Part shown: positions 482-64,000 of the stretch, in pieces
Numbering within the stretch: the first letter of the stretch is position 1
Layout of the letters: the number at the start of each line of letters is the position of its first letter
Notes under the pieces: model-generated
What the model was told of the DNA's origin: nothing
Database searches by the model: none
Seen by the model: only the letters and a program-made list of their open reading frames with translations
Source of the DNA: Blastocystis sp. Blastoise
Lineage: Eukaryota; Protista; Bigyra: Opalinata
Direction of reading: 5' to 3'
Length of the DNA stretch: 64,000 nt
Assembly (NCBI GenBank): GCA_039096225.1
Contig: JBBPEB010000011.1
Span: forward strand, 961,234-1,025,233
Program-made: the position numbers and the translations under genes

Positions 482-1065
482 TTAATCGTTTTTCTTTTCT
501 TCAGAAGTTTTTTCTTCATGAGATTCTACAGATTCTTCAGTGTGTTTAGGAGAAATATGTTCTTTACTAGCTTCTCTATAGGCTTGATATTGACTGAGTA
601 ATGAAGGAAGGCATAATAATAAATAACTTAAAAGAACAGAAAGAACGTTTATAGCAATGTTTCTTTGATATTTAACTATTTTTCTTATTAAATGTTTATA
701 GTCTTTACTAGCATTTCTTCTATGATCAAGTTCAGTAAGATTATAAGCATGAGAAGCACTACTCATTTTATAGATGTTGTCTATTTAAATATACTTGTAA
801 ATATTGTTATCCAATTAAAAAAATTAATAAAAAAAAAGATAAAAAAAAACATACAAATGATATAACCAACACTTCCGATAAGAGTAACCCAATTGATAGG
901 TACAGCTTTATTTAAGAAAGCCATGTATTTCGAACGTAAAACAGCACCAATAGGTAAAGTGAGAATCAACACACCAATAAATTGGATGATATCGATAGCA
1001 ACAAAAGCAATATAATTGAGATTAAGAGCCTCAATGTTTGCAGTAACAATACGAGGAATACGCAT
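482..1065 (-). CDS. BAP29/BAP31 (Yet)-family ER membrane protein, ~169 aa, 2 exons (1065-855, 780-482)
   Basis: ORFs 781..1065 and 482..766 join in frame via intron 854-781 (GTATGT...AATAG, 74 nt), giving ...GSVGYII-YNIYK-MSSASH.... The product has three hydrophobic segments, 'LILTLP' at the end of TM1, 'KYQRN' before TM3 (BAP31 family has AQRN), a charged tail and C-terminal KKND, a KKxx ER-retrieval motif. Family call is from motif recognition, not a database search. Confidence 0.72.
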
Positions 1066-1863
1066 TTTATTTTATACTCAAAGATTAAATAATTATATCA
1101 ATTTTTTTTTTTCTTCTTGAGAAGATCATGGAACTTCCAGAAGAAACACAAATTCTTTTCTCTTAGAAAAACTTCTGTTTATTATATTTGATTACTCTAT
1201 CACCAAACTGTACTTTTTCAACAGGGTTTGCCATAGGCGATCCAAGTTATAATGCATTCCAAAAGTTTTTATCCTACGCCTTGAGCCACCAACAGTACCC
1301 CCTACAACTGGTTCTTTTGGGTTCTTTGTACCCCAGTAGAGTCTTCATGGCGAACCCTGAATGTAGGTTAGCGCCGAACACTAAGAAAGTTTTTCTGTAT
1401 GCCTTAAGAGTCGCAAAGTACCCATAAAAACGGTTTAAAGAACTTTTTTTCTACAAAAGAATTCTTGTGGCGGACCTTAGTTTTTCAAAAGTCAAATTTG
1501 GCCTGTATATCAACATGATTCTTTAATGAAAAAGTTGGCCTACCCTAAAAAGGCTTCTTTTCACAACATTGTTGAACTCAATAAAAACTGGCTCTCTAAA
1601 TATCTCAAGAGAGTTTTTTTGCTGATAAGAAATAATTCTTGGTAATTTGGTTAAGGTGTTGACAAAAAAATAAATTCTTGTGTTATTTGTTGTTCAAAGC
1701 TTAGCTGTGTATAACATAATAAAGTATTTATTTTTTTAAAAGTCAAGCATCATTTACGATACCTTTATATTTCAGAAAGAATAAACTTCGACAAATGAAA
1801 CAAAACAATACCACGTTTGAAACTATTGATTAAATCTTGCTGTTATATAAACAAATTGTATAT

Positions 1864-4280: not shown

Positions 4281-4570
4281 GTAATGTAAATAATAAAAAT
4301 ATCCAAAATCATTCATTTCTTTTCATAAAATAATAAAGATACGTATTCATAAATATTATTGGCTGACTTTATTTCTTTTCATGTGACTTTGAGATTAGGT
4401 TTTTTCTAAATATATTCTCACGGGAATCAGCTAGAAATAGCTCAAAAAATAAAAAGTTTCTTTTCAAATACATAGAGAAAAAGTTGAAACAAGAAATTAT
4501 TATTGGAACATATTAATGTAATACAAAAATATAAAATTATATTTTTTTGCTTTAAGTTTCTTAACAAGAA
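4281..4570. promoter_or_regulatory. Putative bidirectional promoter between two divergently transcribed paralogues
   Basis: Only 290 bp separate ATG 4280 (minus) and ATG 4571 (plus). The interval is AT-rich with a few GC-containing words (TTGGCTGAC ~4359, CACGGGAATCAGC ~4419). Inferred from position only. Confidence 0.55.
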
Positions 4571-7500
4571 ATGTACGTGAAATTTTTGATTTATTTATTT
4601 TTAATCATTTCGGCTTTGGGCCAAGGTATATATATTATGTTTTTTTCCTAAAATTCTTTAGAATGCTTGTATTATCCTGAAGGAGAAGGGTCAGGAGAGG
4701 TATATATTTATTAAAAAACTATTATATATATCAATAGCTTCCACCAGAGGGATATTATGCAGATCCTGTAGAGGAAGATTATTTCCCTGATTTCTATGAT
4801 ATTTGTCCGATAGGTATGACTTCTTTGTTGTATATATTAACTAATTATTATAGGTTACTATTGTACAAATGGATGTAAATACCCTTGTCCACCAACTAAT
4901 TACGGAAGTGAAGAAGGCTTGACAACATCAGAATGTAGTGGAAAGTGCAAAGAGGGTGATTATTATTTAATTTATTAATTAATAGTATATAGGTTATATT
5001 GGTAGCGACGGTCTATATATATTTAAAACAGAAAGTTGTCTAGGAAAATGCAAACAAGGCTATGCTTGCCCATACAAAGGTATATAATAAATTATTTATG
5101 ACATCAAATTTCGTTTGTTTAGGAATGACTGATAAAACAATGATACCGTGTAGCACATATGGAGAAAATTATTATTGCCCATCTGGAACAGTAAACCCTT
5201 TGAAAGTAAAAAATATATTTATATGTATATAATTCAATAAATAGGTAAGTCTGGGATATTATATAATTAAAGATACAAATAGCAATGGTATAAGCCAAAG
5301 AAAATGCGAAAAAGGTAATTATTGTATAGAAGGTATTAAATATTCTTGTCCATCTGGTTCTTATGGTAATGAAACTGGTCTTTATAATAATAATTGTAGT
5401 GGTAAATGTTTAGAAGGTTATTATTGTTTAGAAGGATCTATATCATCAATTGAAAATGAATGTGGTAATGCAAATGTATATTGTCCTTTAGGTTCTTCTT
5501 CTCCTATTAATGTTCCTTTAGGTTCTTATTCTATTCCTCTTGATGTTAATTCTACAATTCGTTCTAATTTTGTTATTTGTGAAGAAGGTAATTATTGTAT
5601 AGAAGGTATTAAATATTCTTGTCCATCTGGTTCTTATGGTAATGAAACTGGTCTTTATAATAATAATTGTAGTGGTAAATGTTTAGAAGGTTATTATTGT
5701 TTAGAAGGATCTATATCATCAATTGAAAAATGAATGTGGTAATGCAAATGTATATTGTCCTTTAGGTTCTTCTTCTCCTATTAATGTTCCTTTAGGTTCT
5801 TATTCTATTCCTCTTGATGTTAATTCTACAATTCGTTCTAATTTTGTTATTTGTGAAGAAGGTAATTATTGTATAGAAGGTATTAAATATTCTTGTCCAT
5901 CTGGTTCTTATGGTAATGAAACTGGTCTTTATAATAATAATTGTAGTGGTAAATGTTTAGAAGGTTATTATTGTTTAGAAGGATCTATATCATCAATTGA
6001 AAATGAATGTGGTAATGCAAATGTATATTGTCCTTTAGGTTCTTCTTCTCCTATTAATGTTCCTTTAGGTTCTTATTCTATTCCTCTTGATGTTAATTCT
6101 ACAATTCGTTCTAATTTTGTTATTTGTGAAGAAGGTAATTATTGTATAGAAGGTATTAAATATTCTTGTCCATCTGGTTCTTATGGTAATGAAACTGGTC
6201 TTTATAATAATAATTGTAGTGGTAAATGTTTAGAAGGTTATTATTGTTTAGAAGGATCTATATCATCAATTGAAAATGAATGTGGTAATGCAAATGTATA
6301 TTGTCCTTTAGGTTCTTCTTCTCCTATTAATGTTCCTTTAGGTTCTTATTCTATTCCTCTTGATGTTAATTCTACAATTCGTTCTAATTTTGTTATTTGT
6401 GAAGAAGGTAATTATTGTATAGAAGGTATTAAATATTCTTGTCCATCTGGTTCTTATGGTAATGAAACTGGTCTTTATAATAATAATTGTAGTGGTAAAT
6501 GTTTAGAAGGTTATTATTGTTTAGAAGGATCTATATCATCAATTGAAAATGAATGTGGTAATGCAAATGTATATTGTCCTTTAGGTTCTTCTTCTCCTAT
6601 TAATGTTCCTTTAGGTTCTTATTCTATTCCTCTTGATGTTAATTCTACAATTCGTTCTAATTTTGTTATTTGTGAAGAAGGTAATTATTGTATAGAAGGT
6701 ATTAAATATTCTTGTCCATCTGGTTCTTATGGTAATGAAACTGGTCTTTATAATAATAATTGTAGTGGTAAATGTTTAGAAGGTTATTATTGTTTAGAAG
6801 GATCTATATCATCAATTGAAAATGAATGTGGTAATGCAAATGTATATTGTCCTTTAGGTTCTTCTTCTCCTATTAATGTTCCTTTAGGTTCTTATTCTAT
6901 TCCTCTTGATGTTAATTCTACAATTCGTTCTAATTTTGTTATTTGTGAAGAAGGTAATTATTGTATAGAAGGTATTAAATATTCTTGTCCATCTGGTTCT
7001 TATGGTAATGAAACTGGTCTTTATAATAATAATTGTAGTGGTAAATGTTTAGAAGGTTATTATTGTTTAGAAGGATCTATATCATCAATTGAAAATGAAT
7101 GTGGTAATGCAAATGTATATTGTCCTTTAGGTTCTTCTTCTCCTATTAATGTTCCTTTAGGTTCTTATTCTATTCCTCTTGATGTTAATTCTACAATTCG
7201 TTCTAATTTTGTTATTTGTGAAGAAGGTAATTATTGTATAGAAGGTATTAAATATTCTTGTCCATCTGGTTCTTATGGTAATGAAACTGGTCTTTATAAT
7301 AATAATTGTAGTGGTAAATGTTTAGAAGGTTATTATTGTTTAGAAGGATCTATATCATCAATTGAAAATGAATGTGGTAATGCAAATGTATATTGTCCTT
7401 TAGGTTCTTCTTCTCCTATTAATGTTCCTTTAGGTTCTTATTCTATTCCTCTTGATGTTAATTCTACAATTCGTTCTAATTTTGTTATTTGTGAAGAAGG

Positions 7501-10500
7501 TAATTATTGTATAGAAGGTATTAAATATTCTTGTCCATCTGGTTCTTATGGTAATGAAACTGGTCTTTATAATAATAATTGTAGTGGTAAATGTTTAGAA
7601 GGTTATTATTGTTTAGAAGGATCTATATCATCAATTGAAAATGAATGTGGTAATGCAAATGTATATTGTCCTTTAGGTTCTTCTTCTCCTATTAATGTTC
7701 CTTTAGGTTCTTATTCTATTCCTCTTGATGTTAATTCTACAATTCGTTCTAATTTTGTTATTTGTGAAGAAGGTAATTATTGTATAGAAGGTATTAAATA
7801 TTCTTGTCCATCTGGTTCTTATGGTAATGAAACTGGTCTTTATAATAATAATTGTAGTGGTAAATGTTTAGAAGGTTATTATTGTTTAGAAGGATCTATA
7901 TCATCAATTGAAAATGAATGTGGTAATGCAAATGTATATTGTCCTTTAGGTTCTTCTTCTCCTATTAATGTTCCTTTAGGTTCTTATTCTATTCCTCTTG
8001 ATGTTAATTCTACAATTCGTTCTAATTTTGTTATTTGTGAAGAAGGTAATTATTGTATAGAAGGTATTAAATATTCTTGTCCATCTGGTTCTTATGGTAA
8101 TGAAACTGGTCTTTATAATAATAATTGTAGTGGTAAATGTTTAGAAGGTTATTATTGTTTAGAAGGATCTATATCATCAATTGAAAATGAATGTGGTAAT
8201 GCAAATGTATATTGTCCTTTAGGTTCTTCTTCTCCTATTAATGTTCCTTTAGGTTCTTATTCTATTCCTCTTGATGTTAATTCTACAATTCGTTCTAATT
8301 TTGTTATTTGTGAAGAAGGTAATTATTGTATAGAAGGTATTAAATATTCTTGTCCATCTGGTTCTTATGGTAATGAAACTGGTCTTTATAATAATAATTG
8401 TAGTGGTAAATGTTTAGAAGGTTATTATTGTTTAGAAGGATCTATATCATCAATTGAAAATGAATGTGGTAATGCAAATGTATATTGTCCTTTAGGTTCT
8501 TCTTCTCCTATTAATGTTCCTTTAGGTTCTTATTCTATTCCTCTTGATGTTAATTCTACAATTCGTTCTAATTTTGTTATTTGTGAAGAAGGTAATTATT
8601 GTATAGAAGGTATTAAATATTCTTGTCCATCTGGTTCTTATGGTAATGAAACTGGTCTTTATAATAATAATTGTAGTGGTAAATGTTTAGAAGGTTATTA
8701 TTGTTTAGAAGGATCTATATCATCAATTGAAAATGAATGTGGTAATGCAAATGTATATTGTCCTTTAGGTTCTTCTTCTCCTATTAATGTTCCTTTAGGT
8801 TCTTATTCTATTCCTCTTGATGTTAATTCTACAATTCGTTCTAATTTTGTTATTTGTGAAGAAGGTAATTATTGTATAGAAGGTATTAAATATTCTTGTC
8901 CATCTGGTTCTTATGGTAATGAAACTGGTCTTTATAATAATAATTGTAGTGGTAAATGTTTAGAAGGTTATTATTGTTTAGAAGGATCTATATCATCAAT
9001 TGAAAATGAATGTGGTAATGCAAATGTATATTGTCCTTTAGGTTCTTCTTCTCCTATTAATGTTCCTTTAGGTTCTTATTCTATTCCTCTTGATGTTAAT
9101 TCTACAATTCGTTCTAATTTTGTTATTTGTGAAGAAGGTAATTATTGTATAGAAGGTATTAAATATTCTTGTCCATCTGGTTCTTATGGTAATGAAACTG
9201 GTCTTTATAATAATAATTGTAGTGGTAAATGTTTAGAAGGTTATTATTGTTTAGAAGGATCTATATCATCAATTGAAAATGAATGTGGTAATGCAAATGT
9301 ATATTGTCCTTTAGGTTCTTCTTCTCCTATTAATGTTCCTTTAGGTTCTTATTCTATTCCTCTTGATGTTAATTCTACAATTCGTTCTAATTTTGTTATT
9401 TGTGAAGAAGGTAATTATTGTATAGAAGGTATTAAATATTCTTGTCCATCTGGTTCTTATGGTAATGAAACTGGTCTTTATAATAATAATTGTAGTGGTA
9501 AATGTTTAGAAGGTTATTATTGTTTAGAAGGATCTATATCATCAATTGAAAATGAATGTGGTAATGCAAATGTATATTGTCCTTTAGGTTCTTCTTCTCC
9601 TATTAATGTTCCTTTAGGTTCTTATTCTATTCCTCTTGATGTTAATTCTACAATTCGTTCTAATTTTGTTATTTGTGAAGAAGGTAATTATTGTATAGAA
9701 GGTATTAAATATTCTTGTCCATCTGGTTCTTATGGTAATGAAACTGGTCTTTATAATAATAATTGTAGTGGTAAATGTTTAGAAGGTTATTATTGTTTAG
9801 AAGGATCTATATCATCAATTGAAAATGAATGTGGTAATGCAAATGTATATTGTCCTTTAGGTTCTTCTTCTCCTATTAATGTTCCTTTAGGTTCTTATTC
9901 TATTCCTCTTGATGTTAATTCTACAATTCGTTCTAATTTTGTTATTTGTGAAGAAGGTAATTATTGTATAGAAGGTATTAAATATTCTTGTCCATCTGGT
10001 TCTTATGGTAATGAAACTGGTCTTTATAATAATAATTGTAGTGGTAAATGTTTAGAAGGTTATTATTGTTTAGAAGGATCTATATCATCAATTGAAAATG
10101 AATGTGGTAATGCAAATGTATATTGTCCTTTAGGTTCTTCTTCTCCTATTAATGTTCCTTTAGGTTCTTATTCTATTCCTCTTGATGTTAATTCTACAAT
10201 TCGTTCTAATTTTGTTATTTGTGAAGAAGGTAATTATTGTATAGAAGGTATTAAATATTCTTGTCCATCTGGTTCTTATGGTAATGAAACTGGTCTTTAT
10301 AATAATAATTGTAGTGGTAAATGTTTAGAAGGTTATTATTGTTTAGAAGGATCTATATCATCAATTGAAAATGAATGTGGTAATGCAAATGTATATTGTC
10401 CTTTAGGTTCTTCTTCTCCTATTAATGTTCCTTTAGGTTCTTATTCTATTCCTCTTGATGTTAATTCTACAATTCGTTCTAATTTTGTTATTTGTGAAGA

Positions 10501-13500
10501 AGGTAATTATTGTATAGAAGGTATTAAATATTCTTGTCCATCTGGTTCTTATGGTAATGAAACTGGTCTTTATAATAATAATTGTAGTGGTAAATGTTTA
10601 GAAGGTTATTATTGTTTAGAAGGATCTATATCATCAATTGAAAATGAATGTGGTAATGCAAATGTATATTGTCCTTTAGGTTCTTCTTCTCCTATTAATG
10701 TTCCTTTAGGTTCTTATTCTATTCCTCTTGATGTTAATTCTACAATTCGTTCTAATTTTGTTATTTGTGAAGAAGGTAATTATTGTATAGAAGGTATTAA
10801 ATATTCTTGTCCATCTGGTTCTTATGGTAATGAAACTGGTCTTTATAATAATAATTGTAGTGGTAAATGTTTAGAAGGTTATTATTGTTTAGAAGGATCT
10901 ATATCATCAATTGAAAATGAATGTGGTAATGCAAATGTATATTGTCCTTTAGGTTCTTCTTCTCCTATTAATGTTCCTTTAGGTTCTTATTCTATTCCTC
11001 TTGATGTTAATTCTACAATTCGTTCTAATTTTGTTATTTGTGAAGAAGGTAATTATTGTATAGAAGGTATTAAATATTCTTGTCCATCTGGTTCTTATGG
11101 TAATGAAACTGGTCTTTATAATAATAATTGTAGTGGTAAATGTTTAGAAGGTTATTATTGTTTAGAAGGATCTATATCATCAATTGAAAATGAATGTGGT
11201 AATGCAAATGTATATTGTCCTTTAGGTTCTTCTTCTCCTATTAATGTTCCTTTAGGTTCTTATTCTATTCCTCTTGATGTTAATTCTACAATTCGTTCTA
11301 ATTTTGTTATTTGTGAAGAAGGTAATTATTGTATAGAAGGTATTAAATATTCTTGTCCATCTGGTTCTTATGGTAATGAAACTGGTCTTTATAATAATAA
11401 TTGTAGTGGTAAATGTTTAGAAGGTTATTATTGTTTAGAAGGATCTATATCATCAATTGAAAATGAATGTGGTAATGCAAATGTATATTGTCCTTTAGGT
11501 TCTTCTTCTCCTATTAATGTTCCTTTAGGTTCTTATTCTATTCCTCTTGATGTTAATTCTACAATTCGTTCTAATTTTGTTATTTGTGAAGAAGGTAATT
11601 ATTGTATAGAAGGTATTAAATATTCTTGTCCATCTGGTTCTTATGGTAATGAAACTGGTCTTTATAATAATAATTGTAGTGGTAAATGTTTAGAAGGTTA
11701 TTATTGTTTAGAAGGATCTATATCATCAATTGAAAATGAATGTGGTAATGCAAATGTATATTGTCCTTTAGGTTCTTCTTCTCCTATTAATGTTCCTTTA
11801 GGTTCTTATTCTATTCCTCTTGATGTTAATTCTACAATTCGTTCTAATTTTGTTATTTGTGAAGAAGGTAATTATTGTATAGAAGGTATTAAATATTCTT
11901 GTCCATCTGGTTCTTATGGTAATGAAACTGGTCTTTATAATAATAATTGTAGTGGTAAATGTTTAGAAGGTTATTATTGTTTAGAAGGATCTATATCATC
12001 AATTGAAAATGAATGTGGTAATGCAAATGTATATTGTCCTTTAGGTTCTTCTTCTCCTATTAATGTTCCTTTAGGTTCTTATTCTATTCCTCTTGATGTT
12101 AATTCTACAATTCGTTCTAATTTTGTTATTTGTGAAGAAGGTAATTATTGTATAGAAGGTATTAAATATTCTTGTCCATCTGGTTCTTATGGTAATGAAA
12201 CTGGTCTTTATAATAATAATTGTAGTGGTAAATGTTTAGAAGGTTATTATTGTTTAGAAGGATCTATATCATCAATTGAAAATGAATGTGGTAATGCAAA
12301 TGTATATTGTCCTTTAGGTTCTTCTTCTCCTATTAATGTTCCTTTAGGTTCTTATTCTATTCCTCTTGATGTTAATTCTACAATTCGTTCTAATTTTGTT
12401 ATTTGTGAAGAAGGTAATTATTGTATAGAAGGTATTAAATATTCTTGTCCATCTGGTTCTTATGGTAATGAAACTGGTCTTTATAATAATAATTGTAGTG
12501 GTAAATGTTTAGAAGGTTATTATTGTTTAGAAGGATCTATATCATCAATTGAAAATGAATGTGGTAATGCAAATGTATATTGTCCTTTAGGTTCTTCTTC
12601 TCCTATTAATGTTCCTTTAGGTTCTTATTCTATTCCTCTTGATGTTAATTCTACAATTCGTTCTAATTTTGTTATTTGTGAAGAAGGTAATTATTGTATA
12701 GAAGGTATTAAATATTCTTGTCCATCTGGTTCTTATGGTAATGAAACTGGTCTTTATAATAATAATTGTAGTGGTAAATGTTTAGAAGGTTATTATTGTT
12801 TAGAAGGATCTATATCATCAATTGAAAATGAATGTGGTAATGCAAATGTATATTGTCCTTTAGGTTCTTCTTCTCCTATTAATGTTCCTTTAGGTTCTTA
12901 TTCTATTCCTCTTGATGTTAATTCTACAATTCGTTCTAATTTTGTTATTTGTGAAGAAGGTAATTATTGTATAGAAGGTATTAAATATTCTTGTCCATCT
13001 GGTTCTTATGGTAATGAAACTGGTCTTTATAATAATAATTGTAGTGGTAAATGTTTAGAAGGTTATTATTGTTTAGAAGGATCTATATCATCAATTGAAA
13101 ATGAATGTGGTAATGCAAATGTATATTGTCCTTTAGGTTCTTCTTCTCCTATTAATGTTCCTTTAGGTTCTTATTCTATTCCTCTTGATGTTAATTCTAC
13201 AATTCGTTCTAATTTTGTTATTTGTGAAGAAGGTAATTATTGTATAGAAGGTATTAAATATTCTTGTCCATCTGGTTCTTATGGTAATGAAACTGGTCTT
13301 TATAATAATAATTGTAGTGGTAAATGTTTAGAAGGTTATTATTGTTTAGAAGGATCTATATCATCAATTGAAAATGAATGTGGTAATGCAAATGTATATT
13401 GTCCTTTAGGTTCTTCTTCTCCTATTAATGTTCCTTTAGGTTCTTATTCTATTCCTCTTGATGTTAATTCTACAATTCGTTCTAATTTTGTTATTTGTGA

Positions 13501-46500: not shown

Positions 46501-49500
46501 TTCTACAATTCGTTCTAATTTTGTTATTTGTGAAGAAGGTAATTATTGTATAGAAGGTATTAAATATTCTTGTCCATCTGGTTCTTATGGTAATGAAACT
46601 GGTCTTTATAATAATAATTGTAGTGGTAAATGTTTAGAAGGTTATTATTGTTTAGAAGGATCTATATCATCAATTGAAAATGAATGTGGTAATGCAAATG
46701 TATATTGTCCTTTAGGTTCTTCTTCTCCTATTAATGTTCCTTTAGGTTCTTATTCTATTCCTCTTGATGTTAATTCTACAATTCGTTCTAATTTTGTTAT
46801 TTGTGAAGAAGGTAATTATTGTATAGAAGGTATTAAATATTCTTGTCCATCTGGTTCTTATGGTAATGAAACTGGTCTTTATAATAATAATTGTAGTGGT
46901 AAATGTTTAGAAGGTTATTATTGTTTAGAAGGATCTATATCATCAATTGAAAATGAATGTGGTAATGCAAATGTATATTGTCCTTTAGGTTCTTCTTCTC
47001 CTATTAATGTTCCTTTAGGTTCTTATTCTATTCCTCTTGATGTTAATTCTACAATTCGTTCTAATTTTGTTATTTGTGAAGAAGGTAATTATTGTATAGA
47101 AGGTATTAAATATTCTTGTCCATCTGGTTCTTATGGTAATGAAACTGGTCTTTATAATAATAATTGTAGTGGTAAATGTTTAGAAGGTTATTATTGTTTA
47201 GAAGGATCTATATCATCAATTGAAAATGAATGTGGTAATGCAAATGTATATTGTCCTTTAGGTTCTTCTTCTCCTATTAATGTTCCTTTAGGTTCTTATT
47301 CTATTCCTCTTGATGTTAATTCTACAATTCGTTCTAATTTTGTTATTTGTGAAGAAGGTAATTATTGTATAGAAGGTATTAAATATTCTTGTCCATCTGG
47401 TTCTTATGGTAATGAAACTGGTCTTTATAATAATAATTGTAGTGGTAAATGTTTAGAAGGTTATTATTGTTTAGAAGGATCTATATCATCAATTGAAAAT
47501 GAATGTGGTAATGCAAATGTATATTGTCCTTTAGGTTCTTCTTCTCCTATTAATGTTCCTTTAGGTTCTTATTCTATTCCTCTTGATGTTAATTCTACAA
47601 TTCGTTCTAATTTTGTTATTTGTGAAGAAGGTAATTATTGTATAGAAGGTATTAAATATTCTTGTCCATCTGGTTCTTATGGTAATGAAACTGGTCTTTA
47701 TAATAATAATTGTAGTGGTAAATGTTTAGAAGGTTATTATTGTTTAGAAGGATCTATATCATCAATTGAAAATGAATGTGGTAATGCAAATGTATATTGT
47801 CCTTTAGGTTCTTCTTCTCCTATTAATGTTCCTTTAGGTTCTTATTCTATTCCTCTTGATGTTAATTCTACAATTCGTTCTAATTTTGTTATTTGTGAAG
47901 AAGGTAATTATTGTATAGAAGGTATTAAATATTCTTGTCCATCTGGTTCTTATGGTAATGAAACTGGTCTTTATAATAATAATTGTAGTGGTAAATGTTT
48001 AGAAGGTTATTATTGTTTAGAAGGATCTATATCATCAATTGAAAATGAATGTGGTAATGCAAATGTATATTGTCCTTTAGGTTCTTCTTCTCCCTATTAA
48101 TGTTCCTTTAGGTTCTTATTCTATTCCTCTTGATGTTAATTCTACAATTCGTTCTAATTTTGTTATTTGTGAAGAAGGTAATTATTGTATAGAAGGTATT
48201 AAATATTCTTGTCCATCTGGTTCTTATGGTAATGAAACTGGTCTTTATAATAATAATTGTAGTGGTAAATGTTTAGAAGGTTATTATTGTTTAGAAGGAT
48301 CTATATCATCAATTGAAAATGAATGTGGTAATGCAAATGTATATTGTCCTTTAGGTTCTTCTTCTCCTATTAATGTTCCTTTAGGTTCTTATTCTATTCC
48401 TCTTGATGTTAATTCTACAATTCGTTCTAATTTTGTTATTTGTGAAGAAGGTAATTATTGTATAGAAGGTATTAAATATTCTTGTCCATCTGGTTCTTAT
48501 GGTAATGAAACTGGTCTTTATAATAATAATTGTAGTGGTAAATGTTTAGAAGGTTATTATTGTTTAGAAGGATCTATATCATCAATTGAAAATGAATGTG
48601 GTAATGCAAATGTATATTGTCCTTTAGGTTCTTCTTCTCCTATTAATGTTCCTTTAGGTTCTTATTCTATTCCTCTTGATGTTAATTCTACAATTCGTTC
48701 TAATTTTGTTATTTGTGAAGAAGGTAATTATTGTATAGAAGGTATTAAATATTCTTGTCCATCTGGTTCTTATGGTAATGAAACTGGTCTTTATAATAAT
48801 AATTGTAGTGGTAAATGTTTAGAAGGTTATTATTGTTTAGAAGGATCTATATCATCAATTGAAAATGAATGTGGTAATGCAAATGTATATTGTCCTTTAG
48901 GTTCTTCTTCTCCTATTAATGTTCCTTTAGGTTCTTATTCTATTCCTCTTGATGTTAATTCTACAATTCGTTCTAATTTTGTTATTTGTGAAGAAGGTAA
49001 TTATTGTATAGAAGGTATTAAATATTCTTGTCCATCTGGTTCTTATGGTAATGAAACTGGTCTTTATAATAATAATTGTAGTGGTAAATGTTTAGAAGGT
49101 TATTATTGTTTAGAAGGATCTATATCATCAATTGAAAATGAATGTGGTAATGCAAATGTATATTGTCCTTTAGGTTCTTCTTCTCCTATTAATGTTCCTT
49201 TAGGTTCTTATTCTATTCCTCTTGATGTTAATTCTACAATTCGTTCTAATTTTGTTATTTGTGAAGAAGGTAATTATTGTATAGAAGGTATTAAATATTC
49301 TTGTCCATCTGGTTCTTATGGTAATGAAACTGGTCTTTATAATAATAATTGTAGTGGTAAATGTTTAGAAGGTTATTATTGTTTAGAAGGATCTATATCA
49401 TCAATTGAAAATGAATGTGGTAATGCAAATGTATATTGTCCTTTAGGTTCTTCTTCTCCTATTAATGTTCCTTTAGGTTCTTATTCTATTCCTCTTGATG

Positions 49501-52500: not shown

Positions 52501-55500
52501 ATGTTAATTCTACAATTCGTTCTAATTTTGTTATTTGTGAAGAAGGTAATTATTGTATAGAAGGTATTAAATATTCTTGTCCATCTGGTTCTTATGGTAA
52601 TGAAACTGGTCTTTATAATAATAATTGTAGTGGTAAATGTTTAGAAGGTTATTATTGTTTAGAAGGATCTATATCATCAATTGAAAATGAATGTGGTAAT
52701 GCAAATGTATATTGTCCTTTAGGTTCTTCTTCTCCTATTAATGTTCCTTTAGGTTCTTATTCTATTCCTCTTGATGTTAATTCTACAATTCGTTCTAATT
52801 TTGTTATTTGTGAAGAAGGTAATTATTGTATAGAAGGTATTAAATATTCTTGTCCATCTGGTTCTTATGGTAATGAAACTGGTCTTTATAATAATAATTG
52901 TAGTGGTAAATGTTTAGAAGGTTATTATTGTTTAGAAGGATCTATATCATCAATTGAAAATGAATGTGGTAATGCAAATGTATATTGTCCTTTAGGTTCT
53001 TCTTCTCCTATTAATGTTCCTTTAGGTTCTTATTCTATTCCTCTTGATGTTAATTCTACAATTCGTTCTAATTTTGTTATTTGTGAAGAAGGTAATTATT
53101 GTATAGAAGGTATTAAATATTCTTGTCCATCTGGTTCTTATGGTAATGAAACTGGTCTTTATAATAATAATTGTAGTGGTAAATGTTTAGAAGGTTATTA
53201 TTGTTTAGAAGGATCTATATCATCAATTGAAAATGAATGTGGTAATGCAAATGTATATTGTCCTTTAGGTTCTTCTTCTCCTATTAATGTTCCTTTAGGT
53301 TCTTATTCTATTCCTCTTGATGTTAATTCTACAATTCGTTCTAATTTTGTTATTTGTGAAGAAGGTAATTATTGTATAGAAGGTATTAAATATTCTTGTC
53401 CATCTGGTTCTTATGGTAATGAAACTGGTCTTTATAATAATAATTGTAGTGGTAAATGTTTAGAAGGTTATTATTGTTTAGAAGGATCTATATCATCAAT
53501 TGAAAATGAATGTGGTAATGCAAATGTATATTGTCCTTTAGGTTCTTCTTCTCCTATTAATGTTCCTTTAGGTTCTTATTCTATTCCTCTTGATGTTAAT
53601 TCTACAATTCGTTCTAATTTTGTTATTTGTGAAGAAGGTAATTATTGTATAGAAGGTATTAAATATTCTTGTCCATCTGGTTCTTATGGTAATGAAACTG
53701 GTCTTTATAATAATAATTGTAGTGGTAAATGTTTAGAAGGTTATTATTGTTTAGAAGGATCTATATCATCAATTGAAAATGAATGTGGTAATGCAAATGT
53801 ATATTGTCCTTTAGGTTCTTCTTCTCCTATTAATGTTCCTTTAGGTTCTTATTCTATTCCTCTTGATGTTAATTCTACAATTCGTTCTAATTTTGTTATT
53901 TGTGAAGAAGGTAATTATTGTATAGAAGGTATTAAATATTCTTGTCCATCTGGTTCTTATGGTAATGAAACTGGTCTTTATAATAATAATTGTAGTGGTA
54001 AATGTTTAGAAGGTTATTATTGTTTAGAAGGATCTATATCATCAATTGAAAATGAATGTGGTAATGCAAATGTATATTGTCCTTTAGGTTCTTCTTCTCC
54101 TATTAATGTTCCTTTAGGTTCTTATTCTATTCCTCTTGATGTTAATTCTACAATTCGTTCTAATTTTGTTATTTGTGAAGAAGGTAATTATTGTATAGAA
54201 GGTATTAAATATTCTTGTCCATCTGGTTCTTATGGTAATGAAACTGGTCTTTATAATAATAATTGTAGTGGTAAATGTTTAGAAGGTTATTATTGTTTAG
54301 AAGGATCTATATCATCAATTGAAAATGAATGTGGTAATGCAAATGTATATTGTCCTTTAGGTTCTTCTTCTCCTATTAATGTTCCTTTAGGTTCTTATTC
54401 TATTCCTCTTGATGTTAATTCTACAATTCGTTCTAATTTTGTTATTTGTGAAGAAGGTAATTATTGTATAGAAGGTATTAAATATTCTTGTCCATCTGGT
54501 TCTTATGGTAATGAAACTGGTCTTTATAATAATAATTGTAGTGGTAAATGTTTAGAAGGTTATTATTGTTTAGAAGGATCTATATCATCAATTGAAAATG
54601 AATGTGGTAATGCAAATGTATATTGTCCTTTAGGTTCTTCTTCTCCTATTAATGTTCCTTTAGGTTCTTATTCTATTCCTCTTGATGTTAATTCTACAAT
54701 TCGTTCTAATTTTGTTATTTGTGAAGAAGGTAATTATTGTATAGAAGGTATTAAATATTCTTGTCCATCTGGTTCTTATGGTAATGAAACTGGTCTTTAT
54801 AATAATAATTGTAGTGGTAAATGTTTAGAAGGTTATTATTGTTTAGAAGGATCTATATCATCAATTGAAAATGAATGTGGTAATGCAAATGTATATTGTC
54901 CTTTAGGTTCTTCTTCTCCTATTAATGTTCCTTTAGGTTCTTATTCTATTCCTCTTGATGTTAATTCTACAATTCGTTCTAATTTTGTTATTTGTGAAGA
55001 AGGTAATTATTGTATAGAAGGTATTAAATATTCTTGTCCATCTGGTTCTTATGGTAATGAAACTGGTCTTTATAATAATAATTGTAGTGGTAAATGTTTA
55101 GAAGGTTATTATTGTTTAGAAGGATCTATATCATCAATTGAAAATGAATGTGGTAATGCAAATGTATATTGTCCTTTAGGTTCTTCTTCTCCTATTAATG
55201 TTCCTTTAGGTTCTTATTCTATTCCTCTTGATGTTAATTCTACAATTCGTTCTAATTTTGTTATTTGTGAAGAAGGTAATTATTGTATAGAAGGTATTAA
55301 ATATTCTTGTCCATCTGGTTCTTATGGTAATGAAACTGGTCTTTATAATAATAATTGTAGTGGTAAATGTTTAGAAGGTTATTATTGTTTAGAAGGATCT
55401 ATATCATCAATTGAAAATGAATGTGGTAATGCAAATGTATATTGTCCTTTAGGTTCTTCTTCTCCTATTAATGTTCCTTTAGGTTCTTATTCTATTCCTC

Positions 55501-58500
55501 TTGATGTTAATTCTACAATTCGTTCTAATTTTGTTATTTGTGAAGAAGGTAATTATTGTATAGAAGGTATTAAATATTCTTGTCCATCTGGTTCTTATGG
55601 TAATGAAACTGGTCTTTATAATAATAATTGTAGTGGTAAATGTTTAGAAGGTTATTATTGTTTAGAAGGATCTATATCATCAATTGAAAATGAATGTGGT
55701 AATGCAAATGTATATTGTCCTTTAGGTTCTTCTTCTCCTATTAATGTTCCTTTAGGTTCTTATTCTATTCCTCTTGATGTTAATTCTACAATTCGTTCTA
55801 ATTTTGTTATTTGTGAAGAAGGTAATTATTGTATAGAAGGTATTAAATATTCTTGTCCATCTGGTTCTTATGGTAATGAAACTGGTCTTTATAATAATAA
55901 TTGTAGTGGTAAATGTTTAGAAGGTTATTATTGTTTAGAAGGATCTATATCATCAATTGAAAATGAATGTGGTAATGCAAATGTATATTGTCCTTTAGGT
56001 TCTTCTTCTCCTATTAATGTTCCTTTAGGTTCTTATTCTATTCCTCTTGATGTTAATTCTACAATTCGTTCTAATTTTGTTATTTGTGAAGAAGGTAATT
56101 ATTGTATAGAAGGTATTAAATATTCTTGTCCATCTGGTTCTTATGGTAATGAAACTGGTCTTTATAATAATAATTGTAGTGGTAAATGTTTAGAAGGTTA
56201 TTATTGTTTAGAAGGATCTATATCATCAATTGAAAATGAATGTGGTAATGCAAATGTATATTGTCCTTTAGGTTCTTCTTCTCCTATTAATGTTCCTTTA
56301 GGTTCTTATTCTATTCCTCTTGATGTTAATTCTACAATTCGTTCTAATTTTGTTATTTGTGAAGAAGGTAATTATTGTATAGAAGGTATTAAATATTCTT
56401 GTCCATCTGGTTCTTATGGTAATGAAACTGGTCTTTATAATAATAATTGTAGTGGTAAATGTTTAGAAGGTTATTATTGTTTAGAAGGATCTATATCATC
56501 AATTGAAAATGAATGTGGTAATGCAAATGTATATTGTCCTTTAGGTTCTTCTTCTCCTATTAATGTTCCTTTAGGTTCTTATTCTATTCCTCTTGATGTT
56601 AATTCTACAATTCGTTCTAATTTTGTTATTTGTGAAGAAGGTAATTATTGTATAGAAGGTATTAAATATTCTTGTCCATCTGGTTCTTATGGTAATGAAA
56701 CTGGTCTTTATAATAATAATTGTAGTGGTAAATGTTTAGAAGGTTATTATTGTTTAGAAGGATCTATATCATCAATTGAAAATGAATGTGGTAATGCAAA
56801 TGTATATTGTCCTTTAGGTTCTTCTTCTCCTATTAATGTTCCTTTAGGTTCTTATTCTATTCCTCTTGATGTTAATTCTACAATTCGTTCTAATTTTGTT
56901 ATTTGTGAAGAAGGTAATTATTGTATAGAAGGTATTAAATATTCTTGTCCATCTGGTTCTTATGGTAATGAAACTGGTCTTTATAATAATAATTGTAGTG
57001 GTAAATGTTTAGAAGGTTATTATTGTTTAGAAGGATCTATATCATCAATTGAAAATGAATGTGGTAATGCAAATGTATATTGTCCTTTAGGTTCTTCTTC
57101 TCCTATTAATGTTCCTTTAGGTTCTTATTCTATTCCTCTTGATGTTAATTCTACAATTCGTTCTAATTTTGTTATTTGTGAAGAAGGTAATTATTGTATA
57201 GAAGGTATTAAATATTCTTGTCCATCTGGTTCTTATGGTAATGAAACTGGTCTTTATAATAATAATTGTAGTGGTAAATGTTTAGAAGGTTATTATTGTT
57301 TAGAAGGATCTATATCATCAATTGAAAATGAATGTGGTAATGCAAATGTATATTGTCCTTTAGGTTCTTCTTCTCCTATTAATGTTCCTTTAGGTTCTTA
57401 TTCTATTCCTCTTGATGTTAATTCTACAATTCGTTCTAATTTTGTTATTTGTGAAGAAGGTAATTATTGTATAGAAGGTATTAAATATTCTTGTCCATCT
57501 GGTTCTTATGGTAATGAAACTGGTCTTTATAATAATAATTGTAGTGGTAAATGTTTAGAAGGTTATTATTGTTTAGAAGGATCTATATCATCAATTGAAA
57601 ATGAATGTGGTAATGCAAATGTATATTGTCCTTTAGGTTCTTCTTCTCCTATTAATGTTCCTTTAGGTTCTTATTCTATTCCTCTTGATGTTAATTCTAC
57701 AATTCGTTCTAATTTTGTTATTTGTGAAGAAGGTAATTATTGTATAGAAGGTATTAAATATTCTTGTCCATCTGGTTCTTATGGTAATGAAACTGGTCTT
57801 TATAATAATAATTGTAGTGGTAAATGTTTAGAAGGTTATTATTGTTTAGAAGGATCTATATCATCAATTGAAAATGAATGTGGTAATGCAAATGTATATT
57901 GTCCTTTAGGTTCTTCTTCTCCTATTAATGTTCCTTTAGGTTCTTATTCTATTCCTCTTGATGTTAATTCTACAATTCGTTCTAATTTTGTTATTTGTGA
58001 AGAAGGTAATTATTGTATAGAAGGTATTAAATATTCTTGTCCATCTGGTTCTTATGGTAATGAAACTGGTCTTTATAATAATAATTGTAGTGGTAAATGT
58101 TTAGAAGGTTATTATTGTTTAGAAGGATCTATATCATCAATTGAAAATGAATGTGGTAATGCAAATGTATATTGTCCTTTAGGTTCTTCTTCTCCTATTA
58201 ATGTTCCTTTAGGTTCTTATTCTATTCCTCTTGATGTTAATTCTACAATTCGTTCTAATTTTGTTATTTGTGAAGAAGGTAATTATTGTATAGAAGGTAT
58301 TAAATATTCTTGTCCATCTGGTTCTTATGGTAATGAAACTGGTCTTTATAATAATAATTGTAGTGGTAAATGTTTAGAAGGTTATTATTGTTTAGAAGGA
58401 TCTATATCATCAATTGAAAATGAATGTGGTAATGCAAATGTATATTGTCCTTTAGGTTCTTCTTCTCCTATTAATGTTCCTTTAGGTTCTTATTCTATTC

Positions 58501-61500
58501 CTCTTGATGTTAATTCTACAATTCGTTCTAATTTTGTTATTTGTGAAGAAGGTAATTATTGTATAGAAGGTATTAAATATTCTTGTCCATCTGGTTCTTA
58601 TGGTAATGAAACTGGTCTTTATAATAATAATTGTAGTGGTAAATGTTTAGAAGGTTATTATTGTTTAGAAGGATCTATATCATCAATTGAAAATGAATGT
58701 GGTAATGCAAATGTATATTGTCCTTTAGGTTCTTCTTCTCCTATTAATGTTCCTTTAGGTTCTTATTCTATTCCTCTTGATGTTAATTCTACAATTCGTT
58801 CTAATTTTGTTATTTGTGAAGAAGGTAATTATTGTATAGAAGGTATTAAATATTCTTGTCCATCTGGTTCTTATGGTAATGAAACTGGTCTTTATAATAA
58901 TAATTGTAGTGGTAAATGTTTAGAAGGTTATTATTGTTTAGAAGGATCTATATCATCAATTGAAAATGAATGTGGTAATGCAAATGTATATTGTCCTTTA
59001 GGTTCTTCTTCTCCTATTAATGTTCCTTTAGGTTCTTATTCTATTCCTCTTGATGTTAATTCTACAATTCGTTCTAATTTTGTTATTTGTGAAGAAGGTA
59101 ATTATTGTATAGAAGGTATTAAATATTCTTGTCCATCTGGTTCTTATGGTAATGAAACTGGTCTTTATAATAATAATTGTAGTGGTAAATGTTTAGAAGG
59201 TTATTATTGTTTAGAAGGATCTATATCATCAATTGAAAATGAATGTGGTAATGCAAATGTATATTGTCCTTTAGGTTCTTCTTCTCCTATTAATGTTCCT
59301 TTAGGTTCTTATTCTATTCCTCTTGATGTTAATTCTACAATTCGTTCTAATTTTGTTATTTGTGAAGAAGGTAATTATTGTATAGAAGGTATTAAATATT
59401 CTTGTCCATCTGGTTCTTATGGTAATGAAACTGGTCTTTATAATAATAATTGTAGTGGTAAATGTTTAGAAGGTTATTATTGTTTAGAAGGATCTATATC
59501 ATCAATTGAAAATGAATGTGGTAATGCAAATGTATATTGTCCTTTAGGTTCTTCTTCTCCTATTAATGTTCCTTTAGGTTCTTATTCTATTCCTCTTGAT
59601 GTTAATTCTACAATTCGTTCTAATTTTGTTATTTGTGAAGAAGGTAATTATTGTATAGAAGGTATTAAATATTCTTGTCCATCTGGTTCTTATGGTAATG
59701 AAACTGGTCTTTATAATAATAATTGTAGTGGTAAATGTTTAGAAGGTTATTATTGTTTAGAAGGATCTATATCATCAATTGAAAATGAATGTGGTAATGC
59801 AAATGTATATTGTCCTTTAGGTTCTTCTTCTCCTATTAATGTTCCTTTAGGTTCTTATTCTATTCCTCTTGATGTTAATTCTACAATTCGTTCTAATTTT
59901 GTTATTTGTGAAGAAGGTAATTATTGTATAGAAGGTATTAAATATTCTTGTCCATCTGGTTCTTATGGTAATGAAACTGGTCTTTATAATAATAATTGTA
60001 GTGGTAAATGTTTAGAAGGTTATTATTGTTTAGAAGGATCTATATCATCAATTGAAAATGAATGTGGTAATGCAAATGTATATTGTCCTTTAGGTTCTTC
60101 TTCTCCTATTAATGTTCCTTTAGGTTCTTATTCTATTCCTCTTGATGTTAATTCTACAATTCGTTCTAATTTTGTTATTTGTGAAGAAGGTAATTATTGT
60201 ATAGAAGGTATTAAATATTCTTGTCCATCTGGTTCTTATGGTAATGAAACTGGTCTTTATAATAATAATTGTAGTGGTAAATGTTTAGAAGGTTATTATT
60301 GTTTAGAAGGATCTATATCATCAATTGAAAATGAATGTGGTAATGCAAATGTATATTGTCCTTTAGGTTCTTCTTCTCCTATTAATGTTCCTTTAGGTTC
60401 TTATTCTATTCCTCTTGATGTTAATTCTACAATTCGTTCTAATTTTGTTATTTGTGAAGAAGGTAATTATTGTATAGAAGGTATTAAATATTCTTGTCCA
60501 TCTGGTTCTTATGGTAATGAAACTGGTCTTTATAATAATAATTGTAGTGGTAAATGTTTAGAAGGTTATTATTGTTTAGAAGGATCTATATCATCAATTG
60601 AAAATGAATGTGGTAATGCAAATGTATATTGTCCTTTAGGTTCTTCTTCTCCTATTAATGTTCCTTTAGGTTCTTATTCTATTCCTCTTGATGTTAATTC
60701 TACAATTCGTTCTAATTTTGTTATTTGTGAAGAAGGTAATTATTGTATAGAAGGTATTAAATATTCTTGTCCATCTGGTTCTTATGGTAATGAAACTGGT
60801 CTTTATAATAATAATTGTAGTGGTAAATGTTTAGAAGGTTATTATTGTTTAGAAGGATCTATATCATCAATTGAAAATGAATGTGGTAATGCAAATGTAT
60901 ATTGTCCTTTAGGTTCTTCTTCTCCTATTAATGTTCCTTTAGGTTCTTATTCTATTCCTCTTGATGTTAATTCTACAATTCGTTCTAATTTTGTTATTTG
61001 TGAAGAAGGTAATTATTGTATAGAAGGTATTAAATATTCTTGTCCATCTGGTTCTTATGGTAATGAAACTGGTCTTTATAATAATAATTGTAGTGGTAAA
61101 TGTTTAGAAGGTTATTATTGTTTAGAAGGATCTATATCATCAATTGAAAATGAATGTGGTAATGCAAATGTATATTGTCCTTTAGGTTCTTCTTCTCCTA
61201 TTAATGTTCCTTTAGGTTCTTATTCTATTCCTCTTGATGTTAATTCTACAATTCGTTCTAATTTTGTTATTTGTGAAGAAGGTAATTATTGTATAGAAGG
61301 TATTAAATATTCTTGTCCATCTGGTTCTTATGGTAATGAAACTGGTCTTTATAATAATAATTGTAGTGGTAAATGTTTAGAAGGTTATTATTGTTTAGAA
61401 GGATCTATATCATCAATTGAAAATGAATGTGGTAATGCAAATGTATATTGTCCTTTAGGTTCTTCTTCTCCTATTAATGTTCCTTTAGGTTCTTATTCTA

Positions 61501-64000
61501 TTCCTCTTGATGTTAATTCTACAATTCGTTCTAATTTTGTTATTTGTGAAGAAGGTAATTATTGTATAGAAGGTATTAAATATTCTTGTCCATCTGGTTC
61601 TTATGGTAATGAAACTGGTCTTTATAATAATAATTGTAGTGGTAAATGTTTAGAAGGTTATTATTGTTTAGAAGGATCTATATCATCAATTGAAAATGAA
61701 TGTGGTAATGCAAATGTATATTGTCCTTTAGGTTCTTCTTCTCCTATTAATGTTCCTTTAGGTTCTTATTCTATTCCTCTTGATGTTAATTCTACAATTC
61801 GTTCTAATTTTGTTATTTGTGAAGAAGGTAATTATTGTATAGAAGGTATTAAATATTCTTGTCCATCTGGTTCTTATGGTAATGAAACTGGTCTTTATAA
61901 TAATAATTGTAGTGGTAAATGTTTAGAAGGTTATTATTGTTTAGAAGGATCTATATCATCAATTGAAAATGAATGTGGTAATGCAAATGTATATTGTCCT
62001 TTAGGTTCTTCTTCTCCTATTAATGTTCCTTTAGGTTCTTATTCTATTCCTCTTGATGTTAATTCTACAATTCGTTCTAATTTTGTTATTTGTGAAGAAG
62101 GTAATTATTGTATAGAAGGTATTAAATATTCTTGTCCATCTGGTTCTTATGGTAATGAAACTGGTCTTTATAATAATAATTGTAGTGGTAAATGTTTAGA
62201 AGGTTATTATTGTTTAGAAGGATCTATATCATCAATTGAAAATGAATGTGGTAATGCAAATGTATATTGTCCTTTAGGTTCTTCTTCTCCTATTAATGTT
62301 CCTTTAGGTTCTTATTCTATTCCTCTTGATGTTAATTCTACAATTCGTTCTAATTTTGTTATTTGTGAAGAAGGTAATTATTGTATAGAAGGTATTAAAT
62401 ATTCTTGTCCATCTGGTTCTTATGGTAATGAAACTGGTCTTTATAATAATAATTGTAGTGGTAAATGTTTAGAAGGTTATTATTGTTTAGAAGGATCTAT
62501 ATCATCAATTGAAAATGAATGTGGTAATGCAAATGTATATTGTCCTTTAGGTTCTTCTTCTCCTATTAATGTTCCTTTAGGTTCTTATTCTATTCCTCTT
62601 GATGTTAATTCTACAATTCGTTCTAATTTTGTTATTTGTGAAGAAGGTAATTATTGTATAGAAGGTATTAAATATTCTTGTCCATCTGGTTCTTATGGTA
62701 ATGAAACTGGTCTTTATAATAATAATTGTAGTGGTAAATGTTTAGAAGGTTATTATTGTTTAGAAGGATCTATATCATCAATTGAAAATGAATGTGGTAA
62801 TGCAAATGTATATTGTCCTTTAGGTTCTTCTTCTCCTATTAATGTTCCTTTAGGTTCTTATTCTATTCCTCTTGATGTTAATTCTACAATTCGTTCTAAT
62901 TTTGTTATTTGTGAAGAAGGTAATTATTGTATAGAAGGTATTAAATATTCTTGTCCATCTGGTTCTTATGGTAATGAAACTGGTCTTTATAATAATAATT
63001 GTAGTGGTAAATGTTTAGAAGGTTATTATTGTTTAGAAGGATCTATATCATCAATTGAAAATGAATGTGGTAATGCAAATGTATATTGTCCTTTAGGTTC
63101 TTCTTCTCCTATTAATGTTCCTTTAGGTTCTTATTCTATTCCTCTTGATGTTAATTCTACAATTCGTTCTAATTTTGTTATTTGTGAAGAAGGTAATTAT
63201 TGTATAGAAGGTATTAAATATTCTTGTCCATCTGGTTCTTATGGTAATGAAACTGGTCTTTATAATAATAATTGTAGTGGTAAATGTTTAGAAGGTTATT
63301 ATTGTTTAGAAGGATCTATATCATCAATTGAAAATGAATGTGGTAATGCAAATGTATATTGTCCTTTAGGTTCTTCTTCTCCTATTAATGTTCCTTTAGG
63401 TTCTTATTCTATTCCTCTTGATGTTAATTCTACAATTCGTTCTAATTTTGTTATTTGTGAAGAAGGTAATTATTGTATAGAAGGTATTAAATATTCTTGT
63501 CCATCTGGTTCTTATGGTAATGAAACTGGTCTTTATAATAATAATTGTAGTGGTAAATGTTTAGAAGGTTATTATTGTTTAGAAGGATCTATATCATCAA
63601 TTGAAAATGAATGTGGTAATGCAAATGTATATTGTCCTTTAGGTTCTTCTTCTCCTATTAATGTTCCTTTAGGTTCTTATTCTATTCCTCTTGATGTTAA
63701 TTCTACAATTCGTTCTAATTTTGTTATTTGTGAAGAAGGTAATTATTGTATAGAAGGTATTAAATATTCTTGTCCATCTGGTTCTTATGGTAATGAAACT
63801 GGTCTTTATAATAATAATTGTAGTGGTAAATGTTTAGAAGGTTATTATTGTTTAGAAGGATCTATATCATCAATTGAAAATGAATGTGGTAATGCAAATG
63901 TATATTGTCCTTTAGGTTCTTCTTCTCCTATTAATGTTCCTTTAGGTTCTTATTCTATTCCTCTTGATGTTAATTCTACAATTCGTTCTAATTTTGTTAT
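4571..64000 (+). CDS. Giant secreted/surface Cys-rich tandem-repeat protein, 3'-incomplete; at least ~19,700 aa if two +1 frameshifts are errors
   Basis: ATG 4571 gives MYVKFLIYLFLIISALGQ (signal-peptide-like). Exons 4571-4625, 4662-4699, 4738-4813, 4854-4955, 4993-5079, 5123-5205 and 5245-onward are separated by GT-AG introns of 36, 38, 40, 37, 43 and 39 nt. The spliced frame reads ...CPIGYYCTNGCKYPCPPTNYG...CSGKCKEGY...YYCPSGTVNPLK-VSLGYY...RKCEK-GNYCIEGIKYSCP directly into the repeat frame. Track ORF 5723..48100 is the segment between the two frameshifts. Confidence 0.85.
5726..5733 (+). other. +1 A insertion (A5 vs consensus A4) in the second repeat unit, creating in-frame TGA at 5731-5733
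   Basis: ATTGAAAAATGA here versus ATTGAAAATGA in the other units. The upstream frame reads ATT GAA AAA TGA. Confidence 0.95.
48092..48100 (+). other. +1 C insertion (CCC vs consensus CC), creating in-frame TAA at 48098-48100
   Basis: TCTCCCTATTAA here versus TCTCCTATTAA elsewhere. It ends the 14,125-aa ORF. The same repeat continues stop-free in the shifted frame for ~58 more units to 64000. Confidence 0.95.

Follow-up and report, generated by a model that had tools for sequence, protein, structure and literature searches.

Does the 273-bp tandem repeat that fills most of a 64,000-nucleotide stretch of Blastocystis DNA encode one very large secreted protein, or is it satellite-like DNA with a left-over open reading frame (ORF)? 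The stretch, referred to throughout as the window, comes from Blastocystis sp. Blastoise (GenBank assembly GCA_039096225.1, contig JBBPEB010000011.1, here C34) and equals C34:961234-1025233; C34 is 1025233 bp long, so that base 64000 of the window is the contig's final base. In our judgement there is a somewhat better than even chance that a genuine gene of the Blastocystis lineage, encoding a secreted protein of very large size, begins in the window, which would contain its 5’ part: a signal peptide and approximately 150 aa of diverged cysteine-rich modules would be followed, without a break in frame, by a hyper-expanded and homogenised array of a 91-aa, 8-cysteine module. Coordinates of the features discussed are collected in Table 1.

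Tandem Repeats Finder reported a single array in the window (period 273, 215.0 copies, 99% matches, 0% indels). Cutting this array at an exact 26-mer anchor gave 213 complete units, 211 of them letter-identical and the other two 274 bp long; the first unit carries a single-base difference. Of the six frames of the unit (for example window:5855-6127:+) one is open, with 91 codons, eight of them for cysteine, and the other five hold 10 to 34 stops per two units. Shuffling the unit 20000 times left an open circular frame of any kind in just 46 cases. An earlier note on this DNA had described 273-bp units in at least 215 identical copies, an array that the repeat analysis confirmed, and had taken them for a stop-free single exon, which the assembled sequence is not, since one-base homopolymer insertions shift the frame at 5730 and at 48094. 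Translation of the assembled sequence from the ATG meets a TGA in unit 2 after approximately 310 aa, and the array spans three frames: about 1.5 units, then an open frame of 14131 aa, then about 58 units. The array runs into the final base of the contig and has therefore been cut off by the assembly; 'at least 215' copies marks a limit of the assembly rather than the size of the gene. The protein of at least 19,700 aa that had been proposed is accordingly unproven, the right flank of the array being absent from the assembly.

Upstream of the array, exons were joined solely for a frame check, all searches and folds having been made with contiguous sequence. The ATG at 4571 opens onto a hydrophobic N-terminus in both the frame check and the translation, and the six introns, of 36, 38, 40, 37, 43 and 39 nt, have a G+C content of 10-20% and run from GT to AG in six cases out of six. 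Exons 1 to 6 total 441 nt, giving phase 0 at 5245, in frame with the unit at 5308, and the leader ahead of the array amounts to approximately 150-170 aa of cysteine modules. The frame check thus matched exactly the 5’ structure first read from the letters, with its signal peptide, six introns of 36-43 nt, diverged cysteine modules and in-frame entry into the array.

A second locus has the same arrangement. Across the 33.3-Mb, 34-contig genome a 38-mer of the unit occurs 409 times in forward and 0 times in reverse orientation, 215 times in C34 and 194 times in a further contig, C18. The C18 array extends from about 820221 to the contig end at 873592 and has the same consensus as that of C34 (approximately 194 units); 189 of 193 anchor-to-anchor intervals are identical, and the variants consist of one substitution, one four-base block, one extra T and one extra A, the last falling in the A-run homologous to window position 5730 (C18:863272+149). 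The gene begins with an ATG at C18:819462 and an N-terminus resembling a signal peptide; it has diverged cysteine modules and five introns, all GT..AG and 33-38 nt long, and its leader enters the array in frame and in module register, at another unit offset than in C34. From the ATG the C18 frame is open for 13279 aa (about 145 units). The left flanks of C18 and C34 have no DNA similarity outside the array, for which reason haplotig duplication of one locus was rejected, and a rolling-circle or amplification concatemer was rejected on account of the ligation library and of two in-frame junctions in module register. In one C18 unit (C18:858630+273; locus L008, around position 7900) the sequence begins GAGATCGG for GAAGAAGG, a run of four adjacent changes; this four-base block makes AGATCGG, the first seven bases of the Illumina adapter, and is probably a short-read polishing artefact.

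Codon usage also bears on the question. All 91 third codon positions of the unit are A or T (68 T, 23 A), and the unique exons of the same gene have A or T at approximately 75% of theirs. Elsewhere in this genome the third-position T fraction is 0.66 in actin, 0.51 in EF-1 alpha and 0.70 in a 1448-aa surface-protein ORF, and an excess of T over A at third positions is a coding-strand signature here. Because the unit has this excess strongly, it looks, as far as composition can tell, like long-constrained coding sequence. The two independent junctions in C34 and C18, each in frame and in register, are much stronger coding evidence than a length divisible by three and an open frame. From the latter two properties, together with the in-frame splicing of the 5’ exons into the array, the earlier note had concluded that the array is coding; the argument from length and open frame is weak for a recently amplified exon fragment, and the conclusion draws extra support from the C18 junction, the codon bias and the predicted fold.

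There is a precedent in Blastocystis sp. DL, of human subtype 3 (ST3), which also supplies the best protein relative of the unit, the hypothetical protein KAK8815864.1 (46% identity, 88 matched stretches). Inside a 1.2-Mb contig of this genome, locus L015 holds a 312-bp (104-aa) unit in 73.8 copies with 97% matches, adjacent units being 95.6% identical in protein; diverged modules stand both before and after the array, which also has a few frame breaks. The two genomes thus have in common the module family, a passage from diverged modules into a long homogenised in-frame array, and a unit length that is a multiple of 3, and they differ in that the ST3 unit is 104 rather than 91 aa long, is present in 74 copies at approximately 96-97% identity rather than in more than 200 at approximately 100%, and has both flanks assembled. 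Homogenised giant module arrays are thus a Blastocystis feature, with a unit that differs by lineage. The ST3 genome has 51.6% G+C (PMC12129017), and the text of that paper makes no mention of these genes (it nowhere uses 'cysteine', 'tandem repeat', 'surface coat' or 'mastigoneme'). By eye, the post-array modules (L015:33020-34184) appear to use mostly T-ending codons, whereas the ST3 array is GC-rich at third positions, so that codon usage would change abruptly inside a single gene.

Several observations weigh against a gene of this kind. The C34 frame stops in unit 2, approximately 420 bp from unique sequence, where polishing should do best. Identical units allow no ratio of nonsynonymous to synonymous substitution (dN/dS) to be calculated, and the open frame could be no more than a carry-over from a piece of exon that was amplified recently. 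Both arrays lack a right flank, none of the 34 contigs begins with array, and a near-identical protein was not found in the public collections searched. Public reads add to this. We checked window:1800-6400 against Logan contigs, where only one public run (X1, whose label 'RNA?' is a guess) contained any of its words, with a share of 0.08. Exact X1 contigs cover 1850-2054, which takes in the final 190 nt of the neighbouring gene and 14 nt past its stop, at depth 2, and unit offsets of about 25-217 only, at a word depth of 2.3-3.0, these being contig depths and not copy numbers. They do not cover the 5’ exons, introns or splice junctions, and, in terms of the same contig depths, X1 has neither a sign of high expression nor the several-hundred-fold excess of unit words expected of a DNA library from this strain. 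The X1 depths pull slightly to sceptical readings. The run also places the unit sequence outside the assembly, possibly from the same study; an exact 38-mer scan of metagenome contigs gave 0 matches.

On one sceptical reading the DNA is real and the array is a satellite-like amplified exon fragment: C34 would make only a secreted protein of approximately 310 aa, the unit-2 frameshift would be genuine and the open frame a leftover. That reading takes the early stop at face value, along with four other small changes (variants or indels) in the two arrays, the inability of identical units to show purifying selection and the very low level of array words in X1. It is harder to reconcile with a C18 frame open from the ATG through about 145 units and with two junctions that keep both frame and module register. 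The ST3 array, from the same pipeline, has frame breaks yet coding modules on both sides, which points to pipeline errors, and C18 has the A-run insertion as well, as expected of a systematic error. We consider an amplified fragment unlikely.

The history of the assembly is informative here. Blastocystis assemblies were produced from Nanopore R9 reads with Flye --meta and polished with racon, Polypolish and POLCA (PMC12129017), and we infer that the window assembly comes from this pipeline, which would explain homopolymer indels, an adapter-like block and contig ends inside an over-long repeat. The two C34 frameshifts are clearly more likely to be residual Nanopore homopolymer errors than lesions, and we think the near-perfect unit identity in the window genome is largely real, because the ST3 array from the same pipeline has sporadic frameshifts and yet kept its 3% variation. 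Phase variation at the A-run was rejected: the A4/A5 tract is too short, and the same change recurs deep in the C18 array.

The size of the arrays could itself be an artefact, with the 215 and 194 copies over-extended or mis-joined, their units homogenised by polishing, and the true arrays much shorter or more varied. Flye contig ends are, against this, built from real long reads anchored in the flank, and 53-59 kb is plausible for reads of a ligation-library Nanopore run. It is true that both arrays lie at contig ends with no right flank in the assembly; an unbridged end is, though, what is expected of a truly near-identical array exceeding the read length. The AGATCGG block indicates that short-read polishing misbehaved, yet the same pipeline preserved 3% unit-to-unit variation in ST3. 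Unit words are not over-represented in X1, a point tempered by depths that come from contigs and are not copy numbers. Taken together, we regard an artefact of size as quite unlikely.

The assembly contains the 3’ end of neither the C34 nor the C18 gene. When the post-array part of the ST3 gene was used to look for the right flank, the search was swamped by array matches and gave no right-flank candidate. Paralogues near the starts of contigs C21 and C19 were rejected as the missing 3’ end, since they are unrelated surface proteins of He_PIG/HRM-like type and complete in themselves. The array forms the end of exactly two contigs, running outward in each, and the start of none, which would suit an arrangement needing no missing contig: C34 and C18 would be the arms of a single chromosome whose tails meet in a giant inverted array, the ORFs ending at the flip and the array possibly serving a structural (for instance centromere-like) role. 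In reverse orientation the unit has stops in every frame and would end each ORF, and the arms of palindromes tend to be homogenised, which would account for a consensus common to both arrays. Against this, the array of the ST3 gene is followed by an ordinary right flank of diverged modules, and short contigs carrying the right flanks may have been lost to filtering. TTAGGG telomeres are present at other contig ends and absent from the starts of C34 and C18, the assembly thus being incomplete in other respects too. A joined inverted array is very unlikely in our view.

If, as we favour, both loci are genes with hyper-expanded arrays, the near-identity of units within and between them would reflect recent expansion together with ongoing unequal exchange or gene conversion. 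That the arrays are identical although their leaders are unrelated implies either a recent transfer from one locus to the other or conversion that is still going on between them; read mixing during polishing may have blurred small differences between C34 and C18.

We next consider what the unit would form. The CxxGxYC-type motifs had suggested a GCC2_GCC3/ephrin-receptor-like repeat, an assignment that the predicted fold favours and the Pfam hidden Markov model (HMM) does not. Pfam PF07699 Ephrin_rec_like (GCC2_GCC3), whose gathering score is 23.1 bits, had no match at E<=1 to 5 in one, two or three units, in the neighbouring gene or in 83 aligned relatives; borderline matches (23.1-23.6 bits) occur only elsewhere in two distant long relatives. 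A scan of all Pfam with the unit, the neighbour and six relatives returned no family for the module. Searching 1.84 billion representatives with phmmer gave 3207 proteins at E<=1e-3 and 473 at E<=1e-30, among them proteins of Blastocystis sp. DL (the best), Cantina marsupialis and MMETSP transcripts. By sequence similarity, then, the module belongs to a large, mainly stramenopile family that has no Pfam entry. A homologue search with two units found nothing above 45% identity in the range of 100-318 aa.

The alignment of 83 sequences has nine invariant columns, seven of which are cysteine. Many relatives have signal peptides and are 1000-1400 aa long, some with TIG, C-type lectin or multi-pass membrane regions. 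Autocorrelation peaks at lags 91, 182 and 273 in relative P0003 and at 90-91 in P0010, P0013 and P0026 show that the 91-aa period is native to the family. Many complete secreted relatives from other organisms (P0002, P0006-P0008, P0011, P0012, P0016, P0020) share a conserved C-terminal tail, C-x3-R-x-C-C(-x2), which has no Pfam description and is a possible site of intermolecular disulfide cross-linking.

AlphaFold2 modelling of two units with the 83-sequence alignment gave a predicted local distance difference test (pLDDT) score of 97.4 and a predicted template modelling (pTM) score of 0.85, superseding a single-sequence run on three units whose pLDDT was only 36.7. The nearest ESM Atlas clusters (template modelling (TM) score 0.80-0.91) consist of unnamed proteins of oomycetes and diatoms that have no Pfam family; clusters bearing PF07699 reach TM scores of 0.55-0.67 to the predicted model. 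Against solved structures, the model aligns with residues 263-309 of EphA2/A4 and 547-601 of CaSR at Z 4.8-5.4 over 46-47 residues, with a root-mean-square deviation (rmsd) of approximately 2 A, and single sub-modules reach a Z of about 5-7 against the cysteine-rich domain (CRD) of EphA2/A4, the cysteine-rich domain of CaSR, thyroglobulin and ELAPOR1. At the level of sequence, a profile search of the PDB gave no match. As modelled, the unit has the small disulfide-rich beta-hairpin of the Eph receptor CRD and would work like an ephrin-receptor/TNFR-type cysteine rod that lies outside recognisable Pfam membership; with PF07699 proteins it shares CPxGxY-type motifs and the sub-module fold, and it differs from them in having no HMM match.

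On this model each unit would fold into two ephrin-receptor/TNFR-like disulfide-rich sub-modules, and successive units would stack into a stiff disulfide-ladder rod like the cysteine-rich tandem of MST1, a Chlamydomonas protein. Each unit has three N-x-S/T sequons. The product would be an extracellular, glycosylated filament, most plausibly of a filamentous surface coat or cyst wall, whose length would scale with copy number. By a rough calculation, with four disulfides per unit spaced as in MST1 at approximately 11 A, a unit would be 4-5 nm long and some 200 units would make a rod of about a micrometre. A bolder and rather unlikely extension is that the coat fibrils of Blastocystis are micrometre-long single polypeptides encoded by arrays of more than 50 kb that unequal exchange keeps uniform even between loci, with independent expansion in each lineage (91 aa in more than 200 copies here, 104 aa in 74 copies in ST3). 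Repeat number would then directly set coat thickness. In a still wilder variant, the facing arrays would be one inverted block of more than 110 kb, ending both genes and shaping the chromosome.

Table 1. Positions of the array gene and of adjoining features in the window.
Feature	Position	Strand	Remark
Exon 1	4571..4625	+	ATG and hydrophobic, signal-peptide-like N-terminus; signal peptide judged by eye
Exons 2-6	4662-4699, 4738-4813, 4854-4955, 4993-5079, 5123-5205	+	encode diverged cysteine-rich modules
Six introns	4626-4661, 4700-4737, 4814-4853, 4956-4992, 5080-5122, 5206-5244	+	
Exon 7, unique start	5245..5307	+	matches the repeat unit in both frame and structural register
Array, 273 bp (91 codons) x 215 copies	5308..64000	+	reaches the contig end
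Frameshift 1	5726..5733	+	A5 for A4 (extra A at 5730, unit 2); +1 shift, leading to I-E-K-stop
Frameshift 2	48092..48095	+	extra C at 48094 (CCC for CC); second +1 shift
Divergent neighbouring paralogue	1864..4316	-	signal-peptide-like start at 4316; short-intron cysteine modules
C-terminal block of the neighbour, 229 aa	1867-2553	-	
Spacer, approximately 250 bp	4317..4570	.	between two divergent start codons

The spacer between the array gene and its divergent neighbour is presumed to be a shared promoter region. The neighbour contains a single-copy homologue of the unit (approximately 3298-3528), and its C-terminal block has at least 53 paralogous matches in the genome, many of them in open frames of approximately 1,000-3,500 aa and one in a frame of 8813 aa. 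Neither Pfam nor a protein-atlas feature search with this block gave a usable match. L012:645-4637 is one of these paralogues. A distant paralogue on C21 has five He_PIG immunoglobulin-like (Ig-like) domains, a C-terminal membrane anchor and an HRM match below threshold (22.5 bits against a cut-off of 26.2). This last match is the only hint of the HormR/SEA-like C-terminus that had been suggested from the neighbour, whose own block matches no Pfam family; a HormR-like stalk and anchor beyond the array is possible.

Two further elements were noted in the flanking DNA. At window positions 1222-1360 lies a GC-richer element of approximately 100-140 nt with at least 29 copies (72-86% identity) on many contigs and both strands, which could be a repeat resembling a short interspersed nuclear element (SINE) or a miniature inverted-repeat transposable element (MITE), or else a small RNA gene family; an Rfam scan of window 1-6000, which includes it, had no match. 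On C18, a GC-rich patch in AT-rich intergenic DNA (C18:817700-817880; L002:6700-6880) contains, by eye, two complementary arms (tggcaattgtcac / tggcaactgtcac), which an inverted-repeat tool at the chosen settings did not report.

Blastocystis is the commonest eukaryote of the human gut. Its surface coat is described as loose fibrils carrying mannose, N-acetylglucosamine, fucose and other sugars, which bind bacteria, vary between subtypes and isolates and are "poorly studied" (PMC6115916, a review). A conserved family of giant secreted disulfide rods would be a concrete candidate for this coat, and, if translated as proposed, its runs of 74 to more than 200 near-identical folded modules would rank with the largest and most uniform coding repeats known from unicellular eukaryotes. 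The module is widespread in stramenopiles and still has no Pfam model. The case also illustrates a failure of long-read assembly and annotation: giant array genes are absent from public protein sets or fragmented in them because they are cut at contig ends and broken by homopolymer errors.

The best match of the predicted model among solved structures is Chlamydomonas MST1 (PDB 8wa2, 9b4h, 8tx1), residues 1567-1768, with Z 9.0 and an rmsd of 3.1 A over 161 of 182 residues at 19% identity, linking the module by predicted fold to the only solved hair-like extracellular protist filament. This region of MST1 is a cysteine-rich tandem similar to the ephrin-receptor CRD, whose disulfide ladder, spaced at approximately 11 A, stiffens the extracellular filament (PMC10602792). 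Both have tandem cysteine-rich modules in a disulfide ladder, in MST1 as part of an extracellular glycoprotein filament and in the Blastocystis unit as a predicted model only. MST1 differs in having nine N-terminal Ig-like domains, a C-terminal polyproline-II helix and just six cysteine-rich modules; Pfam found no Ig family in the available parts of the array gene (the unit) or in its neighbour, and a profile search of PDB sequences detected no sequence relation between MST1 and the unit. We therefore treat MST1 as a work-alike and not as a family member.

A second comparison is with giant secretory proteins that have homogenised repeat cores, namely the Balbiani-ring proteins of Chironomus, the spidroins and the variable number tandem repeats of mucins. 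These share with the array gene one very long exon, near-identical in-frame units, a role as extracellular structural polymer, for Blastocystis the role proposed here, and a copy number set by unequal exchange. Balbiani-ring repeats contain cysteine, and the repeats of all three kinds are mostly of low complexity or partly disordered, whereas the unit in the window is predicted to be a compact folded disulfide module, is approximately 100% identical between copies and belongs to a unicellular anaerobic stramenopile. The C18 locus, the ST3 array and the module family with its MST1-like predicted fold are new here, and what is striking in Blastocystis is the uniformity and the scale of the arrays and the candidate they provide for a backbone of the surface coat.

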